Source: Tubulanus polymorphus (lineage: Eukaryota > Animalia > Nemertea). From it: a stretch of DNA of 64,000 nt. Made by a program: the position numbers and the translations under genes. The DNA lies in NCBI RefSeq assembly GCF_964204645.1, contig NC_134030.1, positions 8,413,122-8,477,121 of the forward strand, written 5' to 3'. Shown here one piece after another: positions 4,440-62,200 of the stretch (position 1 is the first letter of the stretch; each line of letters opens with the position of its first letter). A model generated the notes under the pieces. It saw only the letters and a program-made list of their open reading frames with translations. It did not search any database and was not told the DNA's origin.

Positions 4440-6614
4440 GATTGAAGTAACGTATTTATCTCGGAATTATGTGTTCTTTGAAGGTGTTGGTTTCAAGTCG
4501 CCTGAGGAGCCAGATTTTCGTCCGTTTTTGCGTTTTTTTACTCGTGGAGGCTTGACGTGTCGATGGTTTTTAGTGGTAAAAGTAAAACACTTAACATAAT
4601 GTTGGTGCAGAAAAAGTAGTGACAACAAATTTGATTAAGAGGATAAATTCATTAAACAAATCATTAAAGTGCCGAGATTCCCGCCACAGTAAGTAAAACT
4701 AGCGAGGTCAGATATTGACCGTCTAGTGCTGCTCCTATGTATAACGGTAGCGGGGGAAACGTGAACTAACATAATACTCGCTTGCCAAAGGCCATAGTGG
4801 ACAAACTATTTACCGATTTGCGGCCCTGAAACTACTCAACTGGCAATTTTTCTATAGAAAAAAAGGGTAAGCTTGTATCGGGATAATTCTGTTGGGTAGA
4901 GGGCGAAGGGTGTTGATATTCTACATAGATCTGAAATTAATCCTCGTAGAAATGGATCAGCGAACAAGGAAGTTTTATTTTTCACAAGTTTGACAAATCC
5001 TTTTACATCTTTGTAATAATGACGCCATGCACAAAAGCGCCAGGAATAAAATCACACGCGATGGGGCCAAGGGGCTGGTGGAAGCGAGTTCGGGAGGGAT
5101 ACAGGACCGGTGGCATGCGAGGATGACAAAAATCAGGAATTGACTAGAAAAAGAGAAAGTACAATCTATGCTATTTTCGAATTCAGTTAGTTGCATACAT
5201 AAATCAGGAATTGACAAGCACCCGAGAAAGAAAAACATCAAGAATTTACAAAGAGTGACAAGAAAAACTGTATGTTACTCAAAAATAAGAAGGTTTTACT
5301 AAATGTCGATTAAAAAAAAAGCAAAATGAAATGGAAGTCAATAATTGTAATCCTTAACTTCTACCCCTCGGCAGCCATCTTGATGTACTATGACGTCATG
5401 CGAAGTATACGCAAAATCCACATTAGTCCAGCCAACGAACATTTTGGTTCTCGGGCTTCCATGGGACCTTTATTTTCGTCCTGTCTGTCTGTGGGTGTAT
5501 CTGTCTTCCAGCTACTCAGCTTCGTTAATAGTGGGCCGACCTTGATGACATTTGGGTGCAATGTTAGTACACTCTAGTTTTGCAGTACAAAGAATGGGCC
5601 TAGTGCGCCAGCTGAAAACCAGGCACTAAAAACTCTGTTCTTCACCGATATGACCTTAAAGATGAGCCCATAACTGAGGAACGGGGTCGAAATTCTAACA
5701 TTTTTCTCGACAAAATTTAGCTATTAGCCCTTGGTACAACATATCCAAAATGCAATGGGAACTAACGTTTGGGAATTTCCGAGTTTGAGCCTTAACCCGA
5801 GAACCGTTGTCGCCTATTTCTAATGACAGCAATCTTTCGAAATGCCAGACGACTGCGATGTAAAGCTGGCATTCCTATCATTCATTTATTCATACACTTA
5901 TTGAAACAAAATAAATGATAAGAAGAATATTTTCCTACGATCATTATCTATTCATTCAATGATATATTATAAAGACAGATAGATGGTGACAGTAAAAAAG
6001 TGAAAACTACACGCTTTTGATACACGATTATAGACGAATTATTTTGACTCATTCGTCCCGTCGCGTTCACGTGAAATGTGTAAGCCTACGAAAACAAAAA
6101 TAAAAATCTAAACGCCACTGATAGAAAGTTCATTAATAACACCGTCTTCCTGGGGCATTGTGCCGAAGAAGCGAAAGTCAACGTAAAATATCTGAAGCAA
6201 TAATTCATAGCGCGACTCAAAAAACTCGAAACGTCACATTAATACAGATTGCCCGGGTTAATACGCTCGCGGAAACAAAACCGACGATTCTGATGGATGT
6301 ATTTTATTGTTGAAATTGTTCACTGAAATATCGCTATTTCAGTTGAATATGCCTTTTATAACTTGCCGACCGGTATTTTGACCAGTTTTTACTTCGAAGA
6401 CGCCTTTATCAGTTGCGCAGTGGAGTAATTTCAGAGGTTTGTAATCGACGAGTTTTGTAATTTCAGATATTTCCAAGATTAAAATATTCGAGACATTTGA
6501 AATACTAAATATTTGAAGTGTATATATTATCTTTTTCTCGAATCATAAAGGCATTTGCATTTGTGATTTGATTTACAGAATTGTGTAGAATAATTCTTAC
6601 GATGATAATTATCT

Positions 6615-6748
6615 ACAGGCCCGTGCCAAAGGTGGTTTGGGGGTAGCAAACGAACCTTCTAGAATTTTCAAAGTCCCCTTCAAAAAGTATAATGATCAGG
6701 TACTCAAGGTACTCACTTCTTTTAACAAAAATCTCGGCACGGGCCTGT
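6615..6748. mobile_element. Small MITE-like element with 13-bp terminal inverted repeats
   Basis: acaggcccgtgcc at the left end and ggcacgggcctgt at the right end; no coding capacity. Confidence 0.65.
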
Positions 6749-6822
6749 CAGAAACCTGGCTCAACGATCGTCTAGGTATACGACCGATCTCGATCAAAAC
6801 CGTTTATTTCTAGGAAGATAAG

Positions 6823-9800
6823 ATGAATCATTGCATTGTCGGGCTATTGGTATTGGGCGTGGTCGCGCGGTGTGCCGGCCAGTTTCCGCGTAGCGTTTAT
6901 CTGGACGTCGACGAGACGTTTAAACTAAGCTGGAGATACGACGTGGACGATCGTTCCATAACTTTTGAAATCGAAGCTAAAACTATCGGATGGGTGGGCC
7001 TTGGATTGTCTGCAGACGGGCGGATGAACAACAGTGACCTAGTTTTCGGCTGGAAAGACAAGAGAACCACATTTGTCAAGGTAATGTGAATTCGTAACGG
7101 CTTTGTATTTTCAACGACTGTCGCTCACTGCTTTTTCAGGGGAATTTGAACGATAATCTAAAATCAAGAATAATGAACATTTTTCCATAGATACTCTGAT
7201 TAGAACCTGTTTCATGCTAAAGCATCTATAAATGATAATTTTTTTCGAATCTCCGATACAAGGATGCTATTGGTACTGGCAACTTACAGTGGCAGTTAGA
7301 TACCGATCAGGATTGGAAGGTGAACAATTGGGTGGAGGAAAATGGCTATACGAGAGCAGAAATATACCGAAAACTGTGTACGGGCGACTACAAACAAGAC
7401 CGAGTAATAGATGTAAGATTTTTTATTTCACATAACGAACGATGAGTTTTTTAACCAACGGTGAAACATTACGTCTGCGTTGTGACGATATAGAGAATCA
7501 CACACTGATATAACGAGAAATGTTTAAAGTCCGAAAAGTTTCCTTAGAGCTAATAATTCGACGTTTCGACTATAACCTGATAGTCATCCTTTCATGACTA
7601 TCAGGTTATAGTCGAAACGTCGAATCAATAAATCATTAGCTTTAGAGAAACTTTTCGGACTTCATATTTCTCGTTATATCAGTGTGGGATTCCCTGAGTT
7701 TATCTAGTTTTTTTATACTGCATGTATCTTTTCCTCTGATATGAATCCTTGTATTTTCTTTTATCTATCTTCGATGTCTTATTTGCGATCATTCAAAAAA
7801 GATATTTACTTCCATATTCTACATACAAAGCGCCTGCCGCTTTTCTCGGCATTTTGTTTTATAAGGCTAAACAAAAATGATACCTTGATTCTCCTAATCG
7901 GCCGGGTCATTTTGTACAATGCAATAGAATCTGTTCATTACTATAGCTGCCGCATCTGTTATGGTAAGCTTGATCATGATTTAGAAACAAAATGATGTCC
8001 AGGGTAGATAAGAAGCCCGGCCGGGTCAATCTTTAAGCTCAGCAGAAAGGAGAAACAAGGTATCGATTTTTTAGCCTTGTAGTTGAAGACAAATGCATCT
8101 TTTACATGCGTTTTCTAGTTTGAAATAAAAAACACGTTTTAAACACTTTGCAATCTACAGAATTCGGCTACATACATGCTTTTCCTGCGCGGCAGAACTC
8201 CACCCGAAGACAATAATTTCGACAAGATCACCGGAGTCGTTTGGGGTTCGAGACTTATCTACTTACTTGATCCACCGACACCAGAATTCCATAACACACA
8301 AGCGAATCTAGCAACTGCAGATCTTCTCATTAAAGATGTAAATAGCTATCGAATCTGTCGAATTAATCTGAATCGAATTTAATTAAGAAAATTAATCTGA
8401 TATAGAATCGTGTATGCAGGGGCAGATATAGCGAAATTAGAAGGCCGGTTTTCGAAAGAAAATTTCTTGGATTAAGCAGCATTGTAATATATTAATTTAT
8501 ATTAATATACAATAGTCTGGCAGAAATTGGATTCTTTTCTTTCACTCGACAGGTTCAATACGAAGGTACTTCTTTAGTAGTGTGTCGACTTTATGGTTTA
8601 ACAGAATTTGCTAATATAGCATCCAAGCACCACATAATCAAGGTAAATAGGACAGCGTTAAATGTTCGGGGGTAATCGCATTATAAATGCGAAAAGGTTT
8701 GGTGGAATCCATATGCATTTGCAAGCTCTGCATGCGCGAAGCTTTTTGTGATAGGTTCGGAAGGTCACTAGTAGATTTTGAAAAATTAATTTAAAGCGTT
8801 GAGATGCATCTTACCGACTACTTTAAGTGAATATTTCAATAATGTAAATCATTCTTGAAACATTTTACAGCATAACCTTTGATTTTCTAATACACGTACA
8901 ACTATACATTCAATCACATGAAATCTATGTACTGCTACATGTATATTACAGTTTAGCTCCTGATTCAACTTGGTCCTTTAGTTATGAAACGTTTTCAGTT
9001 CTACATGGATTTTCGGCCTACTCATCCAACAGCTTGTACTTTAGTCTACGAAGACAGTCACATTTTGAGGAGGGTTTTAGAACTCTAAAAGAGTATGAAG
9101 CGTTTAGATGCATTTCCCGCGGGAAATATGAGAAATGTGAAAACCCGACGGAAATCAAGCGCTGGGAGCTGGACAATCGTCGATGAAAAATGAAGTCTAT
9201 TCATTTGATTAGTGGAATTCAGGATATTGCGGCAGGGGGAGGGGGTAGCTTAACGAATATCATCAATATCTTACGTGCGTCGGTCTTCCATCTTTATGTA
9301 GGTAAGGTGAAGTAAGACGCGTTGTATGGAAGAATTGCAAACTTGCCCTGCGTGCATGCAGAACAATAAAAATTACAACTTCAGAAATAACATTTGAATA
9401 TACTTTCAGACGGAAGCTATTTTCAATAGTTCAATACCAAAACGTATTTCGCTCTACCAGTGCTTCGGCATTCCCAGTAACAACAACGCCGTGCAAGGTG
9501 ATTGCAGCGACACTTTTATGTCAGTAGGAGGCACCGGAGAAACGACTACGCAAGTTCTTGCCGAATATCGCGAGAAGTACTGCACTGAGCTTATTGCTAC
9601 GTTCGGCGAAAATAGCGAGGTCAGTGGCGCTTTCCCTGAAATTGGGGACAGGGGTATTATCTCTATATGCAAAAACGAATGCCATATGATCTGAAAACAC
9701 ATGCAGTCCCCCTTAATCATCATCCATTTAAATGGACCAGCATTCATTCAAATGGATTTAGAGCACGATGGAATTATGTTTTTGAATTGACAATTTATGG

Positions 9801-11688
9801 AAATTAACTAGGGATTTACGTATGCTTATGTGAAAATAAATATTTAGGGCGATTTTTTATGCGTACGTACACTTAATCTCGTTTATCCTAGGCAATGGTT
9901 TTTCCGGATGCCGCCGGTATATCAATCGGGGCGGTCGGTGACGCTCAAAGTTTTCTCCTCGAATTGAACTACCCAAGGGGTGGACAGAAAGGTAATTCGC
10001 CTATACGAGTGAGAGATTTCATTATTTCGTGTTACTTGGTACACCGCGCGAATCTTATATTAACATTTAAAAATCAAACATTTAACTCAAGGTGGAACTG
10101 ATAATTCGGGTATCAGATTAACTTATACTTCGATGTTACGACCCCATGACGCAAGCATTCTACAAGTCGGCTCCACACCAACCAAAAACATGGTAATACC
10201 ACCGCTCTACTATAACGGCTTTTTCGTAGAAGGTCACTGCACGCAAGCATGTTTTAGTCAGGTAAAAAATCGTAAATGAGCAAATATCCCGGTTCTGGGA
10301 ACATTCAAAAACTTTTTTCTAAAATAATTTTGTTAGCATTAGGATCCTTCGAAAAGATTTCCTTCGAGAATTTAAACTTATCTATGATATTTGCATGAGG
10401 CATCAAATATGTTTCGAGTATCTAAGAGCGGTTTCTGCACTCTATATCGGTCCTATATATCTATCAAGGGATTTGCCGGTGTAAATTTCACTGGTGAACA
10501 GGAAGTGACGGTATTCGCCGCAAGTATTGCGACGCATCGAACGGCAATGACGACCCGACTGCGGCACGTGAGGGAGGACAGTATGGGCGTAGAAACTCTC
10601 GACAACGAACTACCATTCATCATCAACGATCAGAGATACAATTCTAGAATGCAAATATGGCATCCTCTGTTGAACGTCAAGCTGAAAACGGTAGAATCCT
10701 GAACTCAACGAATTTGAAAATAATTCTAAACCTTTTGTAAACGAAGTTTTTAGTATGTAAGGTTTTTTCAGAGTGACAAATTTATCGTAGAATGCAAATA
10801 CGCGCTGGACAATAAAGTGAAATTTGTAAGTAATTTCTGATATGTATTATCACGCAAAGATTTACCGTCATTCTAGATCAAATATATTGTCATATTTTAC
10901 CGATTTCAGGGTGGCTTACGCGGAGAGGACGAGATGTGTGTCGGAATGCTGGCCTACTATCCAAAAATTCTGCTGTCTCGTTGTATGACGGCCCCTGAAC
11001 GATCCGGCATCATTCGAATCAATTTGCCAAAGCCGACAAAGGACCAAGTGTACGTTGACGGTCACCAGCCTATCGTATTCCCACGTGACCTCGATGGATA
11101 GTAATCGTGTCTTATTCTTTCTTATCGTTTTCACCTGTAGATATAACGATGTTCAGTACTACTCAGCTCTGATGTACGGAGTAGATTGGAGGTATGTCGG
11201 GATCAGAAACAAGTTCCAGTTACTGACGCTCAGAAATGATGCAGTCGTAGTTTGCACCAATTCGAAAACAGGCCAGATCGTCGTAAGTCAAAACGACAAT
11301 TTTATTCTTACTTTCTATGACGATTAATTAACGTAGCAAAAGATGATCTATATGTAGAATGGAAAGCGTTACTTTGAATCCGATTTGCCAGAAACGGATC
11401 GTTATATCTAGATATTTGATTATCATTTTTCTTATATCAGTAGTTTCCATGAATCGATAACGATAGTTTTATTCCTTGCAGCTAAATCGCCTGGTGACTC
11501 AGTACCATCGTATTGATAAGATGTACAACGAAACAGATAAATACGTCTGCGTCCGACCAGAAGTGGTGACACCGCGCGTGGTCACGGTCTTAGTAACCGG
11601 GAAAAATCCTAGCGGATCTTCTGCTGTGAAATCCGTCCAGGGGCTCGTTATGTGTACACTTTTCTTGGCAATGCTTCAGTTATATTAA
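6823..11688 (+). CDS. DBH-like monooxygenase (MOXD1-like; DOMON + Cu type II monooxygenase N/C domains), about 639 aa, probably catalytically inactive; exons 6823-7080, 7263-7412, 8161-8337, 8553-8642, 9410-9619, 9892-9991, 10092-10261, 10469-10690, 10772-10825, 10910-11049, 11141-11282, 11482-11688
   Basis: Signal peptide; DOMON motifs (FKLSWRY, GWVGLGLSADGRMNNSDLVFGW, RKLCTGD); monooxygenase motifs (KHHII, FPDAAGISIG, DNSGIRLTYT..LRPHDA, IPP, GHCTQAC, IVECKY, GGLRGEDEMCV...YYPK). The C-terminal tail is hydrophobic and GPI-like. All 12 exons join in frame with GT-AG introns (1920 nt). Confidence 0.9.
7495..7692. repeat. About 200-bp palindromic (foldback) repeat in MOXD1-like intron 2, each arm carrying the 3' half of a hammerhead-type motif
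   Basis: Arms of about 95 bp are near-perfect reverse complements around the loop cctttc (7588-7593). One arm recurs at about 55511-55615. Confidence 0.85.
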
Positions 11689-11913
11689 TCATTTAATAAC
11701 ACGGAACTCCTTACTCTAATACATACGCACAGAAGAAATTTGTACAAACAAATATCACGGCTTCGCTATAAACAGGCTTGTGTCATAGATTCACTGAAAC
11801 AAAGATCTTTCTTACACCAACAGTACATAAGTGGTGGTACAATAACGTAGAACATGTGCACCTGTACTCGCAAATAATTCGTCCGTATTATAAAAGAAAT
11901 TCATAGTTTTTAC

Positions 11914-11919
11914 AATAAA
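11914..11919 (+). terminator. Candidate polyadenylation signal of the MOXD1-like gene
   Basis: AATAAA about 225 nt after the stop codon, followed by T-rich sequence. Confidence 0.5.
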
Positions 11920-13484
11920 AATAACATTTTATTCATGATCATAACTCATTGTTTTTATATTTATACAGAAAGTCAGTACCCAACCCCTCCAACGAGATTT
12001 AGGATATGTGAAATCAAGTTAGTTTAAAAAAGCTCAGCAATTGTCGGACAGAGGCTGGGTCTAGAGTCGGTTTTCTCATTAACACATTTTTTGAAACTGA
12101 AGTCCAGACACTGGAACTGTATAGCCAGTGCTCTATTATTCATTATTAATGCTAATTTACAAAAACAAATAAGCTATCACAGATTTTGCTTCTTGGAACT
12201 CGGTCAGAGCTATAGCATTATGACGGTATGCGATAATAATGGCACAAGGAAAAATATCAGAGGGGAAAATATAGCATGGATTTAAATGCCAGAAGGTAAT
12301 ATGCAGTGAATTTAGCTGATAGATACGTTTATCTTGAAATAGCTTCCATATATGTAATAATAGCACAAAAGGCTTTGCTTTGATGTAATTAATGATAGCA
12401 AGCTGTTGGTTTGTTTTTAATTTGATATTTTTCATAACGATAAAAAGAGAACTTTGATTTGATAATTTCAACGAAACTTATGATTCGATTAATTACAACG
12501 AAGAATCGTATCAAATTTTTTCACACGCTATTCATTTCATCGTAGATCGATATTTATATTATTTCAGACTATCTACTCTTTAACTGGAAGTGAGCGCAAT
12601 ATGAAGGCACCAGAAGGTCGTATTTTTCAATTATTTGGAACAAGAAGAAATGGAAGGGTGAAGGGAAACATATTTTACAATAGGCGTTTCAAAATGGAAG
12701 GGAACAGGAAAAGAATATAAATGAATTGTTTTTTATTTTTTGGATTATTTCTGCATAAAAGATAAAAAAGTTGAGTAGAAATTGTGATGAATTTGATTCA
12801 AACGATGGGAGAAATCGAAAAATTAACTTTTATGCAAATCACGAGATTGAAAATTAAGACGAACATTTTAAAAAAGTTGTAAAATCAAGACGGGTATATA
12901 ACAAAAAAAGATTTTTTGGTTGAAAAATTGTGATGAAAACACGGAGGACTATAACAATTTTTTTCTTATTTGATAAATTTTGCAGAATTCTGGGAGGCGG
13001 AAAAATGATAAACAATGACTGCGCATTCGCTATTTGATTTCTTTCAATCTAGATATATGTTATAAAAATTTTGAAATCTTATAGTGCGTCATCTGGTGTA
13101 GGTAAGAATATCATGTCCAACGTTTACAAACGCTCATGCTCGCCAATTCTCTGTACATTTCTTTCTGGCATTTTTACCTATCGTATATTTTTGCCTCAAG
13201 CATTTTTTACCTATGGAATCTTTAACTCTGGCATCATTACCTGCATTCGATTATCATAGTCGACAACCGCTTTCATAGCCAGGATTTCAACTCATTCCAC
13301 ATTAAGGAATCATATACAAATGCTGACTAATGAGAGGTTATAACACAAATACAGACTTGAATTGTACAAATATTTTCTGTTTTCGTTCTATAAAAGATTA
13401 TCGGTATGTTGGTTAACACATACGAATCACCCAGCGCCACGCGTTGGTCATCGTGATAAAACTTACCCTACGAACACTAATGTT

Positions 13485-33779: not shown

Positions 33780-44664
<10,885 letters not shown>

Positions 44665-59204: not shown

Positions 59205-62200
59205 TTATTGGTTTGACGTTGTGTCTTGAGATGAACTGTACGTAGCGCTGGATGATTCTTCCGGTAGACCGGCCAAACGGCGGTGGTACAAACGAAATAC
59301 TCGAGGTCTCAAAACAAAAAAGACGAAAATTAAGAATCCTTGGGAACCATTGAAAAATGTGTAGGCTATCTTTAGAACCGGGGTATTTCCGTAGCTAGCC
59401 AGAAAACCGAGATACCACGTTAATCCCATTATCAAAGATAACTTCATAATAATGACGTAGGAGCTGTTTGTTTTTTTCCGTTTCGATTTTAAAACTTTTG
59501 CCATCTTTTTAGCATCTCGTATTGCTCGCATTGTGAACCCGAAAAACAATAAATTAAAGACACAAATCACTGCGATGGGCAATAGAAAAGTATAGACGAG
59601 TTGGTCAGGGTTTGAGATCCAACACACTTGTTTGTCGGTGTATTTGAAGCCGGAGTTTTCTACCCAGAACGTTAGCGAGCCACATATAGCCAGTAAAACT
59701 GCCGGCAGTAGGTAAGCATAAGCGCAATAACGTCTGTAACAACGATACTTTTGGGACTCGTCTCTAATAGTCACGGGACCCCTGAAAGTTCTTAAGGTAT
59801 CGTAGCTGATGACGTTTGTCCAGAAGAACACGACGAGCCACAGATAATGCACGAACATGCCGACTATCGAACACAGCAGTGGACGAGAGAGTAACGATGG
59901 TTGGAAAATCACGGCGTTGAATAACAACATAACGATGAATAAAGAAGCACACATGTTCATCAATGTTTTACCGGGTATCGTACGCAGCGTTCTGAATAAT
60001 GAATAAGTAACAAGTACAACCGTTAAACCAAACAACGACAACGAGCAAGTGATTATAGTTAGTTTAGTCTCAATTTCCGTCGCAAGATCGTAGTTTTGTC
60101 GGTAGAACTCATCCATACAGACAACAACCGAATTACCACTGATCTGTATTTGATCTTCGTTCAGCTCGAGTTTCAAGCCTCCCAGTGTTTCGACTAGGAA
60201 AATACCATCTTTCGTTTCGTTCAAGTGTTCTCTGTTGTAAACCTGTCGCCGTCGGCAGACGTCTCTCTCACAAAGAGCAATATACTTTCTTGTCTGATTT
60301 TCATCCCGATAATTTCGATAAAAAATTCCCAGCTCACTTCTTACCGGTGTCCATTTCCTCAATGTCGAGTTATCACTCCCGAAGAGTGATATGTATTCTA
60401 CGCCATTTTGGACCGTCAGGTCAAACGCTTCGTCTCCGTATTCACGTAGATTCTTATCGTTGCAATTTTCCAAGTCACTTATTTTGAAATTTCTGATTCG
60501 AAATTCGTATTTTTCGATGGGCCAACAGAAAGTTATGTGTGATACCCCAACCCCGAGGCTGGTTAGAATATGATTACCGACATTCTCCAAACTTTCGTAC
60601 GTTACGGTATTCAAATCGGTAAATTCTACCGAATAGTAGAAACGATTGCTCCCGATTTCATTTGGCAATAAGCTTATCTTCCACGAAGTGTCCAACTTGA
60701 AACGTGCAATAACTTTCTCTATTACGTTGACAACAGACGTAGTTAATCGTTTAGTACATTTGTAAAGCACCTTCACATTTGCGAATAAAACTCTCGTTGC
60801 GTTGTATGGAAGAAATTCGGCGTGGAATTCGTCGGAATCGATGCATCTTTTTGAAATCGTGTTGTACAACGTGTTCTTAGCTTCGCAAGTTGGAATTGAC
60901 TGGAGCTTTCTCTTCGTTTTCGGATCAAGTAGATCTACCTCAGCGATGCCTGGTCTGGACAGATCAAATAGCACGGATAATCGTGGGTTTGAACCCATAT
61001 CGGTTACGCCATTTTGCGAGCTTTTATGGCACTGTACGTTGCTTGTATTGAAACCGTTGCACAATGCGCAATGTACATTGCGGAACACGCTGTCGGAATC
61101 GTTCACTTTAATTGGTTCGGTGTATTTATAACAAGGATGATCTTTACCGTGTACATGCGATGGACATCTCATTACTTGATCTGCGGTTCCTTTCGTAAAA
61201 CAGGGAGTTTCTGAATCGGTAAATATCAGTTTGAGTACGTGCTTCTTCAAACTCTGAAACACACTTCTCTGATCATCACTTATCCATTGTGAACGTTCAG
61301 ATGACGGCGGGTCAAACTCCAAGCCCACTTGCCGACTTTTACCATAATTGATATTCGAAAAATGGCAGCGAAGGCAATAGACGTTTCGGAAGAGAATGCC
61401 GCTGTATGAAATAGGGATAAAACTTAGTAAATCGGCCATCGTGGAATCATCGTGAATCGGCAGAGGATTTTCACACGCCTCAATCTCTTCGGCGCTGGTT
61501 TGCCGTGGACATTTCGCAACTGACCAGTAGTAATAAGTTTTATTTCTCCTGTAGAAGTATGGTACGCGGAAGAGTGTACACGAGGCGAATTGCGCGTAGT
61601 TTTGCGATACGGATATACTCATCGGCGTCGTGTAGGTTTGGGTTTTACATAACGCGTAGTAGTCCAAACAACATGTGCCCATCATCACGCACGATTCGTC
61701 ACAAGAACATACAGATGATCCACCTGCGCTTCCACAACGATCTTTACACGTCAACAAAAGACACGTTAGTGTAGCTGCAGTTAAATTGAACGACATTTCG
61801 TAACCTGAAAATTGTAAGCGAATTTACAAATTAGACGAGCGAATAAGCACACACGAAAACATACATTTCAAATGGAAACGTCTGTCGCATTCTATACGTA
61901 AAATGAGGAGATTAATTTCAGTTGACACTCGAGTAAAAGTTAGAAATAAGCAGCAACAAATCAAATTACAGAACGAAAAGGATAGTTTCGTGAGGATGAA
62001 GTTTGAATGTTTGTGGCAAGTATGCTGAATGAACATTTCGAACAAAAGAACGCGTTTGAAGTGTTTATCGATGACAATTCGTCCGAACGTCGAGTGAAAC
62101 ATTTTACAACATTCCATCGACGTAACAAAGGCGCGTAGAAAATGTATTTTGTCGTCGGGACTCTTGATGGGTACGGTACAAGTATTACCTGGTTCAGCGA

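Follow-up and report, generated by a model that had tools for sequence, protein, structure and literature searches.

An intact member of the MOXD/DBH-like family of copper monooxygenases that, judged by its sequence, has lost most of its copper ligands is encoded in the genome of the ribbon worm Tubulanus polymorphus. The gene occupies positions 6823-11688 on the forward strand of a 64,000-nucleotide stretch of DNA (hereafter the window; C6, 8413122-8477121), which was analysed against the background of the whole 268-Mb assembly; on C6, the gene itself spans 8,419,944-8,424,809. Its 12 exons are predicted to specify a protein of 633 amino acids (aa) that would almost certainly be unable to hydroxylate substrates, because ligands known to be required for the reaction are lost. 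We consider it reasonably likely that the gene encodes a MOXD-like, secretory-pathway protein that has been maintained without catalytic activity, and the evidence bearing on this reading, together with the alternatives to it, is set out below.

Loss of the copper ligands

Turnover by PHM and DBH requires both of their coppers, CuH being the electron-transfer copper site and CuM the oxygen-activating site. In DBH, the ligands have been assigned as H262, H263 and H333 for CuH and H412, H414 and M487 for CuM (PMC4846438). The columns of these six residues of human DBH read K, R, N, A, H and M in the window gene, such that CuH has lost each of its three ligands and CuM one of three, and a single His and the Met are what is retained. 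The CuH columns are encoded by AAA (K, 9440-9442), CGT (R, 9443-9445) and AAC (N, 9967-9969), and the CuM columns by GCG (A, 10529-10531), CAT (H, 10535-10537) and ATG (M, 10934-10936), all on the forward strand. An initial annotation of the window had placed these residues at 9440-9445 (K and R), 9967 (N), 10529 (A), 10535 (H) and 10934 (M), and these coordinates proved exact when the codons were checked.

The ligand columns were placed in two ways. MAFFT served to align the model with 11 full-length relatives, and a second alignment was anchored on a family hidden Markov model (HMM), which was derived from nine relatives and applied to all open frames in the window and at the paralogue loci. 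Numbering was carried over from human DBH (4ZEL) via XP_074645948.1, a paralogue from the worm's own genome, and exon 10 in addition aligns directly with 4ZEL over the EEMC motif. In the MAFFT alignment, IPKRISLYQC is paired with VHHxxxxxC, LELNYPRG with ETHYDNP, SIATHR with LHxHL and DEMC with EEMC. Both alignments read the same six residues, and the earlier claim that four of the six copper ligands have been lost is thus borne out.

Could other His residues have taken over? Exons 5 and 6, the source of the CuH site, contain no His at all, the sequence speaks against replacement ligands, and the introns conceal no alternative exon that carries the ligands. The protein might still be an enzyme or a copper protein of another kind, in which the CuM His (10535) and Met (10934), perhaps together with other residues, bind one copper for an altered chemistry or for copper handling; these two ligands are indeed in place, and exon 7 of the CuM domain is conserved as in the active paralogues. 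We regard this as improbable, given that exons 5 and 6 are free of His, that remodelling has affected both HYDNP and the CuM-proximal motif YDFN, that all six ligands are kept in every active family member examined, and that one copper would not suffice for turnover of the PHM and DBH type. A further His, at the C-terminal end of the DOMON domain, had also been described as apparently absent, and this holds as well, the family motif 'YHG.NRG' that follows DOMON being replaced by ITGVVWG. That His is not a known ligand, and a paralogue of the DBH/TBH type (L025, described below) is also without it.

Gene structure and domain composition

The gene model was obtained by translating the three forward frames of window positions 6500-12000 and assembling the exons. 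It comprises 12 exons separated by introns that are all of the GT..AG type (11/11), and the spliced sequence of 1902 nucleotides (nt) codes for 633 aa and a stop, with no internal stops; the initial annotation had likewise described 12 exons that splice without interruption. The start codon is the first ATG downstream of an in-frame stop, AATAAA is found 226 nt 3' of the stop codon, and the exon boundaries, expressed in family-HMM coordinates, are those of the paralogues.

Exon 1 (6823-7080) contains the start codon, a signal-peptide-like N-terminus (aa 1-20, 6823-6882) and the first half of the DOMON domain, the second half of which follows in exon 2 (7263-7412; family-HMM positions 101-149). 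The end of DOMON and a linker, including the altered 'YHG.NRG' motif, lie in exon 3 (8161-8337). The CuH domain starts in exon 4 (8553-8642), which terminates in KHHIIK (K.H.IK in the family), and extends over exon 5 (9410-9619), where the HH pair has given way to K and R, and exon 6 (9892-9991), where HYDNP, the motif of the third CuH ligand, reads NYPRG. Within exon 5, three Cys align to family Cys in the MAFFT alignment, and an insertion of about 14 aa is present. The CuM domain begins in exon 7 (10092-10261) and continues in exon 8 (10469-10690), in which HxH has become A-T-H and 8 aa are inserted. Exon 9 (10772-10825) contributes 18 aa, and exon 10 (10910-11047) carries the EMC motif with the retained CuM Met. 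The C-terminal domain is encoded by exons 11 (11157-11282) and 12 (11482-11688), the latter ending in a patch of small residues (SGSS), a short spacer, a hydrophobic end of 15 aa, GLVMCTLFLAMLQLY, and the stop. All exons are on the forward strand.

The model is wholly computational, and the donor of exon 10 is weak (GTGTAC), with an alternative donor 6 nt downstream; an error in the model could mean that the real transcript has other, ligand-bearing exons, or that two genes share the locus. Such an error appears extremely improbable, as all 12 exons are matched by paralogue exons in the same order, and the family HMM, applied to every open frame on both strands of window positions 6001-12500, recovered the modelled exons only and no second exon bearing HH, H or HxH. 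In a second sample, contigs span portions of most exons and agree with the window gene throughout these portions, which indicates that the window sequence is real. The second sample departs from the window at a single intronic site (A>G at 8439), which is too little for any test.

Scanned exon by exon against Pfam, the gene matches DOMON (PF03351) in exon 1 with 53 bits (E 4.9e-14; cut-off 32.7) and in exon 2 with an E value of 2.3e-5. Cu2_monoox_C (PF03712) is matched by exon 10 with 24.1 bits (cut-off 23) and weakly by exons 7 and 8, in the right order. The match to Cu2_monooxygen (PF01082) is weak and confined to exon 6 (profile positions 98-124, 14 bits, E 0.052, cut-off 30), and exon 5 alone gave no Pfam match and only chance matches in the PDB. 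With the family HMM, exon 1 scores 81.5 bits, inside the paralogue range of 66-98, and exon 7 scores 55.7 bits, as against 47-67 in the paralogues. Homology of the putative CuH domain is suggested by the full-length alignment, the Cys pattern and the common exon boundaries. Overall, the DOMON match, the score of exon 10 above the cut-off, the exon boundaries and the position in the tree described below sustain the earlier description of an intact MOXD1/DBH-like gene.

The structural Cys had also been described as kept. This is the case for 8 of the 10 conserved Cys in the HMM alignment, while the remaining two stand off their columns there and appear to have been shifted by the alignment rather than lost, MAFFT putting one of them in the family column and the other at a distance of two residues upstream. 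As for the ends of the protein, its hydrophobic stretches are confined to aa 1-20 and aa 616-633, in agreement with the signal-peptide-like start and the tail reminiscent of a glycosylphosphatidylinositol (GPI) signal that had been noted before. The C-terminus is made up of SGSS, a spacer of 6-7 aa and 14-15 hydrophobic residues that run to the end; this arrangement resembles a GPI signal, and the anchor is to be taken as putative only. Four N-glycosylation sequons are present in the protein.

Origin within a lineage-specific expansion

Pfam searches of the whole genome returned about 18 DBH-like loci, and 16 genes were reconstructed exon by exon; the window gene itself is too diverged to be detected by such searches. 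Wherever the ligand columns are covered, all 16 reconstructed paralogues read H, H, H, H, H and M. The window gene is present in a single copy without a ligand-less sister, and nothing closely similar to its exons 5 and 8 occurs elsewhere in the genome. Its best full-length relative in a library of representative proteins is XP_074645948.1, a DBH-like monooxygenase protein 1 homolog of T. polymorphus, which is 96-100% identical to a set of tandem copies on C3. The full-length relatives retrieved with phmmer, using exon 1 as the query, come from mite, oyster, crab, tunicate, crinoid and others, and the full-length identity of the window-gene protein to any relative is about 25-33%.

In a tree inferred under LG+G4 from an alignment with the ligand columns removed, the window gene is nested in the worm's own expansion with a support of 100/100. 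Its end branch amounts to 1.81 changes per column, compared with about 0.72-0.8 in the sisters that descend from the same node, which corresponds to an acceleration of about 2.4-fold.

The expansion is organised in part as tandem arrays, with four genes on C3 (23.388-23.430 Mb; L028-L031), three on C4 (1.010-1.027 Mb; L032-L034) and a pair of MOXD-like genes on C1 (1.407-1.416 Mb; L040-L041). All the arrayed MOXD-like genes are intact and have the six copper ligands, and they bear witness to a large expansion, in this lineage, of a family of orphan enzymes. At another locus, L025 (C7:4466000-4475000) displays the DBH/TBH-type motifs VHHMEVFHC, SQLHTHTTG and DEMCVN and is, on these motifs, likely to be the genuine tyramine/dopamine beta-hydroxylase of the worm.

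Probable maintenance of the reading frame

A gene that has lost its copper site may have been kept for another role, or it may be dead or dying, that is, an unexpressed duplicate silenced only recently (by loss of its promoter, for example), in which a stop or a frameshift is still to come. Neutral evolution was simulated for the coding sequence together with the 22 dinucleotides at its splice sites, with substitutions only, which is conservative. The fraction of runs still intact was 6.7% at 0.02 changes per site, 0.05% at 0.05 and zero at 0.1, and a neutral phase beyond about 0.02-0.05 changes per site is hence almost certain to have disrupted the frame or a splice junction. In the four codons that no longer specify a ligand, on the other hand, at least 7 of the 12 bases differ from the His codon CAY. 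Given how rapidly the gene breaks under neutrality, changes of this extent imply that the loss of the ligands preceded by far any neutral phase there may have been, and that the frame was subsequently kept by selection.

The divergence of the gene is also unevenly distributed. When the identity of the model to the paralogues is scaled by that of the paralogues to one another, exon 7 stands at 0.97, exon 10 at 0.79 and the DOMON exons at about 0.62, and exon 5, the HH exon, is the most diverged of the gene at 0.39. A gradient is likewise seen across the family columns, with the model keeping 79% (38/48) of the non-ligand columns that are at least 95% conserved, 57% of those conserved at 75-95%, 38% of those at 50-75% and 15% of those below 50%. 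The copper-ligand columns are kept in 2 of 6 cases, which differs from the class of at least 95% conservation with a Fisher p of 0.033. Uniform decay would not be expected to leave a pattern of uneven exons and graded conservation, so that what remains for a dying gene is a very recent silencing. Protein distances between the window gene and its paralogues exceed 2 changes per site, and the synonymous sites are therefore saturated. The earlier proposal of a maintained gene thus receives indirect support from the simulation, the base changes, the conservation gradient and the uneven exons, all of which suggest that the reading frame was maintained long after the copper site was lost.

Several observations weigh against a maintained, non-catalytic protein, and some of them are equally what a dying gene would show. 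A check of sequencing runs provided no transcript support: the one possible RNA run of T. polymorphus contained none of the gene's words, and the other three runs were DNA-like, with contigs that run through the introns and contain none of the spliced joints; being unspliced, these contigs are uninformative on expression. The window-gene protein was not found in a library of 1.84 billion representatives, nor in word searches with exon queries, although its RefSeq paralogue from the same assembly, XP_074645948.1, is present in these libraries. This contrast raises the possibility that the gene may be unannotated as coding, which is a caution rather than proof. No orthologue was found by phmmer with exon 1 or by word searches with exons 1 and 5, in which only fragment-sized proteins could match. 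A query that combined a mite homologue with the exons retrieved nothing but relatives of the mite protein, and is uninformative because MAFFT had scattered the exon fragments in it. The branch of the window gene is 2.4 times as long as those of its sisters, and because of this length its exact placement within the clade is unsure. Moreover, the Fisher test on the ligands reaches a p value no better than 0.033, and replacement ligands have been excluded by sequence only. The lack of RNA evidence, of a library entry and of a known orthologue, together with the long branch, would all suit a gene on its way to extinction. Even so, considering how narrow a time the neutral simulation leaves for it, and how far the ligand codons have moved within an open frame, we judge a dead or dying gene to be unlikely, though by no means negligible, and prefer a maintained protein without catalytic activity.

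A candidate pseudoenzyme and its relation to known systems

The maintained, non-catalytic protein would have arisen by DNA duplication among the MOXD/DBH-like copper monooxygenases that have expanded in the worm. Its predicted make-up is that of a secretory-pathway protein, in which a signal peptide is followed by DOMON, a monooxygenase fold of two lobes, the C-terminal domain and a short hydrophobic tail of GPI-signal-like appearance. Its CuH site would be wholly gone (HH to KR, H to N) and its CuM site left with one His and the Met, while the frame, the splice sites, most Cys and most of the near-invariant fold residues would have outlasted the ligands. Their retention long after ligand loss would point to selection for a non-catalytic role, and we infer that the conserved DOMON domain and the retained fold would serve as a membrane-tethered module for binding or partnering; the initial annotation had likewise proposed, as candidate roles, a binder of amines or other ligands, a decoy or a partner of an active paralogue. 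A more specific and more tentative proposal, which we hold to be possible rather than probable, is that the gene encodes the first described pseudoenzyme of the DBH/PHM family, kept by selection, with its DOMON domain and fold acting as a membrane-tethered binder or as a regulator of active MOXD-like enzymes. In our literature searches, we did not come across any account of a DBH-like protein devoid of its ligands.

To our knowledge, MOXD1 and MOXD2 are still orphan enzymes with unknown substrates, and no function has been assigned to DOMON in DBH. A member of the family that is devoid of the copper site and has a DOMON domain conserved as in the active paralogues would suggest that the family has a function independent of catalysis, and would offer a handle on it. 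It would also constitute a further case of enzyme families giving rise to dead paralogues. Since the observation is limited to a single gene of a single species, it carries modest weight for the time being.

MOXD2 possesses a signal peptide for the endoplasmic reticulum (ER), a GPI signal and 13 coding exons (PMC4125168). The window gene resembles MOXD2 and MOXD1 in the order of a predicted ER signal peptide, DOMON, a putative Cu2_monooxygen domain, Cu2_monoox_C and a C-terminal hydrophobic stretch (a GPI signal in MOXD2), is likewise distributed over many exons (12 as compared with the 13 of MOXD2), and has as its nearest named relatives proteins that bear MOXD names. The two part ways at the copper sites, where the MOXD proteins and the 16 paralogues from the worm's own genome keep six ligands whereas the window gene keeps two. 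With DBH and TBH (4ZEL) it shares the fold family, the Cys pattern and the EMC motif of the Met ligand, but H262, H263, H333, H412, H414 and M487, which are required in DBH, are represented by K, R, N, A, H and M. The worm's gene of the DBH/TBH type is apparently a separate locus, L025, at 4.47 Mb on C7.

Partial losses of the copper centre are also encountered elsewhere in the family. Two of 18 catalytic cores of the sampled relatives are without the HH pair and retain the other four ligands, one in the crinoid Anneissia japonica (XP_033098160.1; YT) and the other in a protein of the slime mould Physarum polycephalum (SN). These proteins resemble the window gene in that their CuH site has degenerated while the remainder of the protein is intact, and differ from it in that the third CuH His and the whole of CuM are retained. 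The crinoid, Physarum and ribbon worm lineages are unrelated and the losses at CuH are thus independent, which is a hint that the family sheds its CuH site repeatedly. A parallel is provided by the hexamerins and pseudo-hemocyanins of arthropods, which have lost the His ligands of their coppers and retained the fold for a role that involves neither catalysis nor oxygen binding. They belong to another fold and family, that of the type-3 copper proteins, and their expression and function are documented.

Other features of the window

Intron 2 of the window gene houses two repetitive elements. At 7492-7695 lies a nested palindromic element that resembles a miniature inverted-repeat transposable element, with arms of 30-44 nt that are 80-95% complementary, and at 7788-8155 a very high-copy repeat for which the word depth in the source run adds up to about 23,000, as compared with about 40 in the flanks. 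Further along the window, a 452-aa open frame on the forward strand (41255-42613) contains several immunoglobulin-type domains (V-set, Ig_3 and ig). On the reverse strand, a single frame of 863 aa (59205-61796) corresponds to a seven-transmembrane receptor of the secretin/adhesion type (7tm_2, E 1.4e-24) that bears a somatomedin-B domain at its N-terminus.

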